A stretch of DNA of 63,842 bases, filler included, from Platydemus manokwari (taxonomy: Eukaryota): assembly GCA_037951405.1 (NCBI GenBank). It is 5 parts of 5 records of this genome, joined end to end, with 100 filler letters (N's around TTAATTAATTAA, not from the genome) between each part and the next. Parts side by side here need not be neighbours in the genome. Positions count along the whole stretch, not along the records: positions 1 to 11,865 come from JBBMOY010426666.1; 4 more parts are not named here. One strand, given 5' to 3'. Under the pieces are notes generated by a model. That model searched no databases, was not told the DNA's origin, and saw nothing but the letters and a program-made list of their open reading frames with translations. A program made the translations under genes and the position numbers. This document shows, in pieces, positions 3,720-8,189 of the stretch. Numbering within the stretch: position 1 is the stretch's first letter; each line of letters opens with the position of its first letter.

Positions 3720-6700
3720 TTACCCAAACTTAACTCTTACACGGAGACGTGATCGTGCCCCGAATAATCCGCCAATAGTTCTTCCTACGCCTCTAATTAG
3801 ATTAGCTACCCCACTCAATAGACCTCTTTTCTTTCTTGAATTCTTATCGACGACCACTTTCTTCATCCACACTCGTGTTTTAAAATTGAACGCATATCCA
3901 TTTTTAACAGCTTCATACATTTGTGAAAATACATTAAAGGTTTGCAAAAACCAATTAGCGGTTTGTAAATCGATTTTTCCGAATTCTTTCTTATTAATTA
4001 TGGTGATTAAATTGTTTATTTCTTGACCTATTTGTGGGCGATTGTTTTCATCGATATACACTAGAAAAGATTGCCAATCCATCTTTATCAATTGATTTAT
4101 TTTATTTTTCAAATCTTCGATTGTATTCTGATCTAAAACGGTTTTCACGTTTCCAGATTCTACAACTTGGACTTCTTTCTTTTCCCATGTCTTAGTTTTT
4201 GAATTGAATGTAAACCCATTACTGATTGCTTCGTTTATTCGAGAAAATGTTTGAAACATTTGATTAAACCAATTAAAGTATTGTATATCTAATTTTTCTA
4301 ATTGTTTGCTATCAGCTAGATTGATTACTTTATTAATGTCAGTACTAATCTGTGCTCGCTGACTTTCATCTAGATAAACTAAGAACGACACCCAATTCCA
4401 TTCTTTTAATTTTCTTATTTTTTCATTGAATTCAGCCACCGATTTATCATTCAATACACTTTCTTTCTTGAATTTCAAATCCTCTTGAATGATTAAATCA
4501 ATTACTCTTTGTAGTTGGTCTGCCCAATCAACATTTAATGCAGTTTCTTTGTTATTCGATAATATCAGCTTAATTCGTTCGATCCACACAGTTTGATCAA
4601 TTCCTTGAATTCTTTTCACGAGATCAATCCAGTTACTTGGAAGATTAACTTGAATTCTATTAATAATTTCTTTTGTCGATACCTTTACACGAACAATAGC
4701 TTTGAATCGTATAATTATCTCATTTATAAAATTGTACAAATCGGCATTAATCTTATCATAATCTTTGTTTAGAACATATTTTATTATTAATTTTATTTTT
4801 GCACGTATTTCGTCTCGTTTGTTTTCTTCAAATTGATTAATCAGTTTTTCCCAATCAATTTCTTGTAAATATTTCACAAAATCAATTGAAACAACTTGTT
4901 TCTTTTCTTTTTCTCCGTCTTTAATAACATCTCCTTTGTTTTCATTTCCTTTATTCGAATCTCCTTTGTTTTCGTTTCCTTTATTTTCATTTCCTTTATT
5001 TTCATTTCCTTTATTTTCATTTCCTTTGTTTCTATCACTATCTTCTTTAACTTTTTTAAATCTTATAATTATATCCGTTATAAATTTATGTAAATTTTCA
5101 TCAATTTTATTAAATTCCTTGTTTTGTACTAACTTTATAATCAGTCTAATTCTTTCAATTATTTCGGTTCTCTTATTTTCTTCAAAGTGTTTAACTAGAC
5201 TTTCCCATCTTATGTTTTTCAAGAATTTAATAAAGTGGATCAATGCCACGCTCTTCTCATCATGATCACATTTTCCTTTATCATGTTCTTCTTTTGCTAC
5301 TTTGAATCGAATAACTATTTTCGTTATGAAACCACGCAAATCTTCATTGATTTTATCGAACTCTTTGTTTTGAACTAATCTAATAATGAGTCGTATTTTC
5401 TCCAAGATTTCTGCTCTATTGCTTTCTTCAAAATGTCTTACCACATCTTCCCATTTAATACTCATTAAGAATCTAATTATGTTGATAACTGCTGAATTTC
5501 GATCGCCACTGACTACTTTGTCATTGTCTTCTTTTACTTGCTTGAATCTAATAGTTATCTTAGTGACATAATTATACAAATCTGAGTTGATTTTATCAAA
5601 TTCCCTGTTTTGAACCAATCTAATAATGAGTCGTATTTTCTCTAATATTTCCGCTCTCTTATTTTCTTCGAAATTCTTAACTAAATTCTCCCAACCAATG
5701 CTTAGTAAAAATTTAACAAATCTTACGATTTCTATATTTCTATCTTCGTCGTTTTGTCCTTTGTCATGGTCTTCTTTTACTTGTTTGAATCGAATAACTA
5801 TTTTCGTTATAAAATTATGCATGTTTTCGTCAATTTTATCGTATTCTTTGTTTTGAACAAATCTAATAATCAATCTAATTCTTGTCAATATTTCATTTCT
5901 AATATTTTCTTCAAAATGTCCTAACAAATTTTCCCAATTAATATTTTGTAGAAATCCAACAGTTCTCACATAATAAGCATATTTTTCATTCTCATTTTCA
6001 TTCTCATCTTTGCTGAATTTCGAGATATATTCAACTACTTTGATAATATAATCATAAAATTCTTTATCAATCCTATTATATTCTTTATTTTCTACGAATT
6101 TCATAAATAATTTTATTTTCGCTGCTATATCGTTTCTCTGACTCTCTTTAAAACGATTGATTAGTTGAGACCATTTAACCCTGATTAAGAATCGTACAAC
6201 TTTCTCATATTCCTCGGCATCTTCTTCTTCTTCTTTTTCATGACTATTACAACCACATGTTTCTCTCATTTTCAATGTTCTCAAATTGGTCACTATTTGA
6301 TGTATAAAGGCCAATAAATCCAAATTTAAGTTATTGATTTCTCTGTTTTGAACATATCGGATAAATAATTTTATTCTTGCAATAATTTCTGGCCTATCGT
6401 CTTCATTAAAGTTTTCCACTAAATTTTCCCAATTCAGCAATTGCAAGAATTTTAAATAATTCAAACCAGTCTCATAGACTGCATTATCATTATTTTGTCC
6501 AGTTTTAATTTTAAAAGTTATTCGAATTCTCAATGTACCCAACGATGTAATTATTTGATTAATCGAATGAATGAATTGAAGATTAATTTTACCAAAATCT
6601 CTATTACGGACCAGATTAATGAACAGACGAATTTTTTCCAGAATTGCACTTCTCTTACTTTCTTCCACATGCTCCAAAAGATTTTCCCATTGCAAATTCT

Positions 6701-8189
6701 GTAATAAAAGAAGATACTTGTTCGATGTATCAATTAATGCCTGCTCTCTATCTTCTTCTGACTCATTATCAAATAAAATCCTAATTTTAATTCTCACAAT
6801 TGTTTTAAAAGTTTCACCAATAAATTGCAGTAAATCATTATCGATTTTATCAATTTGTCTATTTCGAATGTAACCGATAAATATTTTTAATTTATTAATT
6901 ATTTCCAGATTTTGTGGACCACCGTATCGTTTCGTCAAATCTTCCCAATCGATATCCTCTAAGAATGCAATATAACGCAAAGCATTGTCTAATATTAATT
7001 GTTGTTGGCTCATATCGGTTTTATAAGTGACCAAATATCTAATTTTAAAAGTTACCATTTTTGCTATGACATCTGTAACAAATCTGATTGTCTCAATATC
7101 AATGTTATCATAATCTTGTTGTCGTACTAATAAAATGAATGCCTTAAGTTTTTCAACAATTTCTGCTCGTTTATTTTCTTCATAATAATTCAAAAAATCT
7201 TCCCACCGAGATTCTTCCAAGAATTGAGAATATCTAATCAACATTGTCAAAATTATCTGTCTCAGTCTCGCAATTTTCACCAGACCAATTCTTGCCGGTC
7301 CACGTCTAACGAAACCTCGCAGTCTGATACGAAATCTGATTTTCAATCGCTGCTGATTTCTGCAAAAGAAAAAATGTCAAATAGTCAGTGTAGAGATTTC
7401 AAAATCAATTAATATTTCAATGATTATTTTAAATAGAAAAAATATTTAAAATAAAACATAAATGTTCGATTAAATTTGCCTTGATATTAAGATTGTTTTA
7501 TTTTAAAAGTATTAATTAATTGTTTTTTAAACATAACTAATTATTTAATAAATTATTGAAATCATTTAAATTTTGTTTAAATATTAAAAATTATTGTTAA
7601 ACAATTTAAATGGAAAGTTGAAAAAAAGAAAACTACTTTATAAATTTATTATTATTTTTTATTATTTATTTAAAATTAACTTCGAATAGCCTACCAATGA
7701 TTAATTATTTGTTTTGATTTTTATTTAATCAATCTTTTTATATTTTACCTTAAACCAGATCCTTCACTAGGGTCCACTACCCAATATTGATCTTCCTTTA
7801 AACTCGGTCCCCATGGTTTCAAAATAGCCTTTGATAAAAAAGTGAAAACACAATTTACATGTAAAAATATTTTTACTTTATCTCTCTCGGTAAATGGAGA
7901 TGAATATTGTTGTGTCTTTTGTTGACATATTGCCTGGGCTTCTTCATAGGTTGTTTCGTACCTAGAAACATAATAGCACGCTTCATTTGGAATGCAAATT
8001 CTATCTATAATTGAAAACATAATTTCATTAAAATACCGATAGATATTTAATTTTCAAGCTTTCATACCGAATGCATCTTGATAATTGTGGACAAAAGTTG
8101 TTGTACCTGTAAAATTGAAATCAAACTAAATGAATTCATTTAATCAACTCACATAGAAGTACAAAAGAACATAATGTTATTGCTAACAT
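3720..8189 (-). CDS. Secreted 1307-aa protein: signal peptide, truncated C-type lectin-like domain, 13 helical repeats, RKKR site, cationic C-terminal peptide
   Basis: Exons: complement(8153-8189, 8068-8106, 7877-8004, 7749-7828, 3720-7359). All introns are GT-AG and the total is 3924 nt in frame. The protein starts MLAITLCSFVLLCTTTFVHNYQDAFDRICIPNEACYYVSRYETTYEEAQAICQQ...YWVV and splices in frame into the 1208-aa ORF, whose TTG start is internal. AATAAA lies at 3547-3552 (minus). Confidence 0.85.
4926..5030 (-). repeat. Coding 15-bp minisatellite, 7 units of NKG(N/D)(E/S/V)
   Basis: Encodes NKGNE x4, NKGDS, NKGNE, NKGDV between helical repeats 9 and 10. Confidence 0.95.

Follow-up and report, generated by a model that had tools for sequence, protein, structure and literature searches.

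The C-type lectin-like domain (CTLD) is among the best-studied extracellular domains, and variants with a shortened, missing or swapped long loop are known. This loop lies between strands beta2 and beta3, has ~30 residues and bears the EPN/QPD calcium and sugar site (PMC6468738). An intron just downstream of the WIGL motif is known in fish antifreeze CTLD genes (PMC514892), and CTLD proteins are made by flatworm glands (PMC7958881; PMC9229212). Here, we describe a minus-strand gene of Platydemus manokwari (GenBank assembly GCA_037951405.1) whose product is best read as one CTLD in which the long loop, with its calcium and sugar site, appears to have been replaced by a single 1,212-codon exon (exon 5). 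The gene lies near the start of the window, by which we mean the whole 63,842-nucleotide stretch of DNA analyzed, in the part from record JBBMOY010426666.1 (positions 1 to 11,865). The DNA there is AT-rich and animal-type, with 20-33% GC.

Gene Structure and Two Probable CTLD Halves

An earlier, sequence-only reading of the window had joined four small in-frame exons to a 1208-aa open reading frame (ORF). The ORF is present on the minus strand at 7346-3720, and the four exons were confirmed: across GT-AG introns of 46, 63, 48 and 389 nt they splice to the big exon without a stop or a shift of frame, and the GC content of exons 2-4 is 36-42% versus 15-21% in their downstream introns. The 3' end of the gene had been misplaced. 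The stop codon then assigned (3722-3720) lies inside a fifth GT-AG intron, where it forms part of the donor site (GG/GTAA at 3723), and exon 6 had been missed. This exon was recognized from a cysteine-bearing frame just beyond the ORF stop in a six-frame scan; it is 124 nt long and is entered in phase 2. Intron 5 falls in the size class of the other introns and also contains ATTAAA. An alternative acceptor at 3703 was rejected, as it gives an immediate stop when paired with the 3723 donor.

The full model, based on splice signals and frame, has six exons encoding a 1,347-aa protein, with five canonical introns and the frame kept throughout (Table 1). Exon 5 consists of 1,212 intact codons, its frame opening six codons before the acceptor and closing at the donor. 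The first 15 residues are hydrophobic and signal-peptide-like by hydropathy, in keeping with the N-terminus first proposed, and we infer that the protein is secreted; the lectin-like head described with it proved to be only half a CTLD.

Searches (PDB, Pfam and Atlas) and structure predictions covered the spliced model exon by exon. CTLDs made up five of the six PDB matches of exons 3-4, which were weak (best SP-D, CLEC2D and NKG2A, E 0.13-0.9). In Atlas features, the same exons clustered with Lectin_C at 0.89, and 10 of the 10 best matches were of that family, which we take as a lead only. Both PDB matches of exon 6 were CTLD proteins (the CTLDs of PLA2R and a snaclec). All six cysteines of the long-form CTLD are present in order, three in exon 3 and three in exon 6, where the last two have the spacing C3-x7-C4. 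P0002, one of two homologues described below, retains the three cysteines of the C-half. The EPN/QPD and WND motifs are absent, and there is instead a rudimentary Y-T-N (F-T-N in P0002). The domain is interrupted between the WIGL-like strand, putatively beta2 based on the position of its motif, and C2. Because two separate exons indicate complementary halves of one fold, and the six cysteines are ordered, the gene is likely to encode a split CTLD, and the protein probably belongs to the CTLD superfamily. The insert would have arrived by exon shuffling into the post-WIGL intron.

The Helical Insert and Its Homologues

The insert bears 13 four-helix units. The repeat consensus, the class of repeats 1-4, the recent expansion of repeats 6-10 with a 240-bp spacing of repeats 7 and 8, and the separate class formed by repeats 12-13 with their hairpin had all been noted previously and were upheld; at the DNA level, repeats 6-9 are spaced 243/240/246 nt. 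The repeats are far beyond chance, with a reservation for one unit. Repeats 1-10, in the correct register, are 20-63% identical against a null of 7.5 +/- 3.8%, and the leave-one-out hidden Markov model (HMM) E values for repeats 1, 2 and 5, those tested of the ten, were 1e-17 to 1e-21. Repeat 11 is marginal against the other repeats (HMM E 0.03), yet it groups 100/100 with the unit at the same position in both homologues.

A single repeat is predicted to fold as four helices (residues 2-15, 18-24, 27-45 and 54-72), with a predicted local distance difference test (pLDDT) value of 94. The single-sequence model of repeats 6-13, in which the hairpin strands also appear, is unreliable (pLDDT 48). 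Pfam searches with exon 5 and single repeats gave only sub-threshold, inconsistent matches, and a repeat profile had no family match among PDB sequences. Fold searches with the repeat returned generic helical bundles only (best Z 6.5), with no Foldseek match at E 0.001; the closest Atlas fold was a 62-aa bacterial unknown (TM 0.69), and an Atlas feature search with the repeats was blank. The insert appears to define a new four-helix repeat family without a Pfam, PDB or fold match. The linkers are charged and of variable length. Most positive charge sits towards the two ends of the insert, in alternating Arg/Lys-hydrophobic strands, and the repeat cores have almost no net charge. Alternating cationic/hydrophobic strands occur six times versus 0.7 expected (maximum five in 2,000 shuffles), for a pattern that was picked post hoc. 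Exon 5 has three cysteines only, all in linkers: a CxC after repeat 4 (6240-6262) and a single Cys after repeat 8. These are candidates for inter-chain cross-links.

The repeat profile found only two real matches among 1.84 billion proteins, P0001 (UPI000602F892) and P0002 (UPI00060AB4B2). These are 33-39% identical to the window protein, with the same repeat classes, and ~50% identical to each other over their overlap; they are probably paralogues in a family of at least two. P0002, the sole homologue to reach the C-terminal end, has in a single chain repeat 11, a hairpin-type repeat 12, the hairpin, RKRR and the CTLD C-half. Its last 36 residues match exon 6 at 39% identity (E 1.4e-6), with a local score of 98 versus a shuffle maximum of 51. 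It has one hairpin-type unit versus two in the window protein, and P0001 has three near-identical tandem units. Most deeper branches of the repeat tree were unresolved. The pattern suggests that the central repeats expanded separately in the window gene and in P0001, with units 11 and 12/13 kept by position.

Other candidates were rejected. A DUF4042 score for P0001 arises from its three near-identical repeats and is absent from the window protein, and weak HMM matches (P0003-P0005) were unrelated bacterial repeat proteins. A homologue search with full exon 5 returned nothing at 666-2121 aa, searches seeded with P0001 and P0002 brought back only themselves, and two metagenome scans gave no match.

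Proposed Function and Alternative Explanations

The explanation we prefer, and for which our confidence is about evenly balanced, is that the protein is a secreted scaffold, in which the CTLD disulfide would clamp the chain as a loop and furin would nick it to give two chains that stay linked. Its signal peptide would direct it to the secretory pathway. Based on the known CTLD fold, the two CTLD halves would co-fold and the C1-C4 disulfide, Cys52-Cys1341, would close a giant loop, with the cationic strands at both insert ends forming a stalk. A furin-type convertase would nick this loop at RKKR, the conserved site that the sequence-only reading had already identified and the only RX[KR]R in the 1,211 residues of exon 5, located after the last unit. 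Cleavage would split the protein into a heavy chain and a light chain of 74 aa, which stay joined by the disulfide. The calcium-free CTLD may act both as a clamp and as a knob that binds proteins; the helical beads may provide a spacer of changeable length, and the cationic strands may bind anionic partners. A spacer is favoured over an enzyme because the repeat number varies through separate expansions. The mature protein could be a structural part of a gland secretion such as mucus, rhabdite, adhesive or cocoon matrix; a gland origin had been proposed earlier and is presumed here.

Several points weigh against this scaffold. No RNA run was found to contain the gene, so its splice junctions and expression are predicted from sequence signals and homology. 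Each CTLD half is sub-significant in Pfam and PDB: the separate exons had no Pfam match, including to PF00059, and their best PDB matches were at E 0.13-1.3, none significant. A two-sequence profile of the C-half scored no better, and the strict PROSITE pattern PS00615 fails. The CTLD N-half was not seen in either partial homologue, and both homologues are partial gene predictions recorded in UniParc only, with no contig deposited for either. UniParc identifiers in their range derive from WormBase ParaSite, and the absence of both from NCBI and UniRef, which cover most nematode proteomes, would fit Schmidtea mediterranea; by this reasoning the sequence, taken by itself, is probably that of a flatworm, most likely a triclad. 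The multi-repeat model, at pLDDT 48, does not settle whether the units would be beads on a string or a packed solenoid.

Of the alternatives, the one that survives best, although we judge it unlikely, is a furin-armed defence protein. In this case, cleavage would free the N-terminus of a CTLD-tethered, Gly-rich cationic helix that attacks microbial membranes, and the repeats would serve to deliver this helix or to hold it latent. A response to bacteria is seen in planarian CTLD proteins (PMC7958881), the furin site is conserved, and the hydrophobic moment (muH) of 0.60 directly after RKKR exceeds the 95th percentile of exon 5. The 34-residue tail defined in the sequence-only reading has a net charge of +7, of which the Gly-rich helix itself has only +2. 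The counterpart segment in P0002 is still amphipathic (muH 0.51), but it has a net charge of 0 and is unrelated in sequence. Fold searches matched no pore-forming or saposin-like protein, and 1,200 repeat residues would be superfluous. The sequence-only reading had gone further, with a cleavable cationic C-terminal tail as a released effector. That tail did not stand, as the segment is internal and continues into exon 6, and a released effector peptide is unlikely. Because the segment runs into the CTLD C-half, cleavage at RKKR would leave the disulfide-held light chain rather than a free peptide. What remains of the earlier interpretation is a secreted, lectin-related protein with unrecognised helical repeats; its combination of lectin head, scaffold and released effector does not.

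Rather improbable, in our view, is that the split CTLD is an assembly device, where pairing between molecules, or a loop opened by furin, would let the secreted protein build a polymer of helical beads locked by disulfides. Slightly less probable again is a trans-complementing polymer, in which the N-half of one molecule would pair with the C-half of the next. Disulfides would then link molecules head to tail into chains or networks, taking to an extreme the swapping of long loops seen in snaclecs. Some 1,200 residues separate the two halves, and CTLDs are known to swap through the long loop (PMC6468738). The alternating cationic strands could also pair between molecules. Against this, co-translational folding in the endoplasmic reticulum usually favours an intramolecular disulfide.

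A lipid-carrier or storage polyprotein, similar to the nematode polyprotein allergens (NPAs) or to yolk proteins, with a small lipid in each helical unit, is doubtful. The tandem all-helical units are 41-46% hydrophobic, and the protein would be secreted and has a convertase site. However, the NPAs are cut into many single units (PMC3079579), versus one RX[KR]R in exon 5; neither sequence nor fold searches linked the units to ABA-1, FAR, saposin or apolipoprotein; and the long-helix moments of 0.31-0.43 are ordinary for bundles. The lipid carrier suggested in the sequence-only reading found no positive support.

More doubtful still is that exon 5 is an optional cassette, with a compact free CTLD as the main product and the long form minor, or that intron 5 is retained to give a tail isoform. 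Exon 5 is symmetric, so a transcript lacking it stays in frame, has 20 residues from Trp84 to C2 and would restore a compact 135-aa CTLD; intron 5 holds a stop and the ATTAAA. On the other side, exon 5 is intact over its full length and the repeats are joined to the C-half in P0002, and intron retention would leave C1 unpaired. The cassette is compatible with the scaffold as an extra isoform. Finally, a prediction or assembly artefact, with unrelated pieces splicing in frame by chance, is consistent with the lack of RNA support but is very improbable and largely refuted by contigs of an independent DNA run that tile 3300-8500, by the five canonical introns that keep frame and by the same 3' layout in a homologue.

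Sequence Variation and Neighbouring Features

The locus was present in one public run (X1), whose contigs retain the introns, indicating that the run behaves as DNA. Its contigs support the assembly and the DNA contiguity of exon 5 and are uninformative on splicing. At 5730-5763, in the linker between repeats 6 and 7, an X1 contig had eight base differences from the window in 34 bp, with four residues changed; the adjoining contigs were identical to the window. This variation may represent a divergent allele, gene conversion or a paralogous copy, and suggests fast linker evolution. Another X1 contig links 5955 back to 5516, with a short side of 48 letters, and this join may reflect a paralogue or a copy in which the number of repeats differs. 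Inside intron 4, 7395-7456 is a high-copy dispersed repeat (summed contig depth ~1,000, with many loose ends).

Approximately 310 nt downstream of the gene stop, at 3130-3234, there is a 105-bp hAT/Buster-type miniature inverted-repeat transposable element with imperfect ~13 bp terminal inverted repeats and an 8-bp target-site duplication with one mismatch. Upstream, 9100-9490 holds probable exons of a minus-strand neighbour gene with an acidic Ser/Asp/Glu stretch, no Pfam match and a possible 38-nt GT-AG intron near 9235-9272. The region at 10620-10980 has a higher GC content (33%) and short, broken minus-strand frames with no Pfam match, and is possibly a decayed transposon or gene.

Table 1. 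Features of the putative split-CTLD gene, in the direction of transcription (positions count along the window).
Feature	Position	Strand	Remarks
TATA-like box	8234-8240	-	51 nt 5' of ATG; consensus match only
Initiator-like TCATT	8209-8205	-	20 nt 5' of ATG
Exon 1: start codon and most of predicted signal peptide	8153-8189	-	hydropathy peak 2.7
Exon 2: signal peptide end and short linker	8068-8106	-	splice signals, frame
Exon 3: putative CTLD N-half, C0 (Cys29), C0' (Cys35), helix alpha1, C1 (Cys52)	7877-8004	-	
Exon 4: helix alpha2 and putative strand beta2 (WIGL-equivalent, Trp84); phase 2 end	7749-7828	-	
Exon 5: symmetric phase 2-2, 3,636 nt, putative insert in CTLD long loop	3724-7359	-	
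N-side cationic stalk (putative), alternating Arg/Lys-hydrophobic strand	7251-7358	-	net +13, first 45 residues
Helical repeats 1-5, period 86 aa	6006-7256	-	~7256-7038, 6998-6780, 6740-6522, 6482-6264, 6224-6006
Helical repeats 6-10	4686-5987	-	5987-5769, 5744-5526, 5504-5286, 5258-5040, 4904-4686; recently expanded, charged linkers
Low-complexity pentapeptide linker, repeats 9-10	4928-5031	-	15-nt unit, 6.9 copies
Repeat 11, divergent unit	4464-4682	-	kept at same position in both homologues
Repeats 12 and 13	3858-4445	-	4445-4227, 4127-3909; beta-hairpin after each: 4220-4176, 3902-3858
Furin-type RKKR, residues 1270-1273	3825-3836	-	RKRR at same place in P0002
33-aa segment following the furin-type site: amphipathic, Gly-rich helix (muH 0.60) and, after it, an alternating cationic strand	3726-3824	-	
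Intron 5: 52 nt, GT-AG, 13% GC	3672-3723	-	holds stop codon of the sequence-only reading
Exon 6: putative CTLD C-half, C2 (Cys1316), C3 (Cys1333), C4 (Cys1341), stop codon	3548-3671	-	
AATAAA overlapping exon 6 stop, then T-rich stretch	3547-3552	-	

Comparison with Known Systems

With the CTLD superfamily (PF00059, long form C0-C0'), the window protein shares the order of the six cysteines, the alpha1 motif, a WIGL-like beta2 and the terminal C-x5-F-I-C. It differs in that a long loop of ~30 residues in the canonical CTLD compares with ~1,230 residues here. Classical calcium-dependent C-type lectins require EPN/QPD and WND, and as both are absent the window protein is not one of them. Saposin-like proteins have six cysteines per ~80-aa unit, versus three in all of exon 5. 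Precursors of released cationic antimicrobials have a conserved C-terminal peptide after a basic site, whereas the segment in the window protein is internal and that of P0002 is neutral. The NPAs (ABA-1) are likewise secreted, tandem all-helical units with convertase processing, but their sites lie between successive units and they have no CTLD; the window protein has one site, and neither the sequence nor the fold of ABA-1 was matched, although the fold negative carries little weight.

Flatworm gland CTLD proteins (Girardia CTL-like genes, Dj-CTL, ap1 and Tmed-ctl1) are secreted, some are large and repetitive, and they occur in mucus or adhesive glands (PMC7958881; PMC9229212). In these proteins, compared by description, the CTLD is found alone or with EGF, vWD, C8 and TIL domains, and none is described as split or with helical repeats. 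A literature search for a split CTLD with a multi-domain array in its long loop found no report, with most subscription journals outside its coverage, and a search for the two UniParc identifiers found nothing.

If confirmed, the window protein would indicate that a CTLD can serve as a two-part clamp, and its gene would be a clean case of mid-domain exon shuffling, a symmetric exon in the post-WIGL intron. It would also explain why annotation misses such genes, as neither half scores as a lectin. Were the CTLD indeed an assembly device, this would be a previously undescribed way for an animal to build its extracellular matrix, for example the mucus of rhabdites or the cocoon wall. Rhabdite and mucus proteins are poorly known, and if the relatives are planarian, function would be directly testable through RNAi and the single-cell and mucus proteome data already available.

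The snaclecs likewise have no calcium or sugar site, have a rudimentary W-x-N on beta4, and have a long loop that is expanded and repurposed (PMC6468738). In a snaclec, a short index-finger loop is exchanged between the small subunits of an alpha/beta heterodimer, whereas the window protein is a single 1,347-aa chain with a 13-domain array and a convertase site, and there is no sign of close kinship between them. Overall, by analogy, the window protein would work most like a non-calcium CTLD with a repurposed long loop, on a far larger scale than in the snaclecs.

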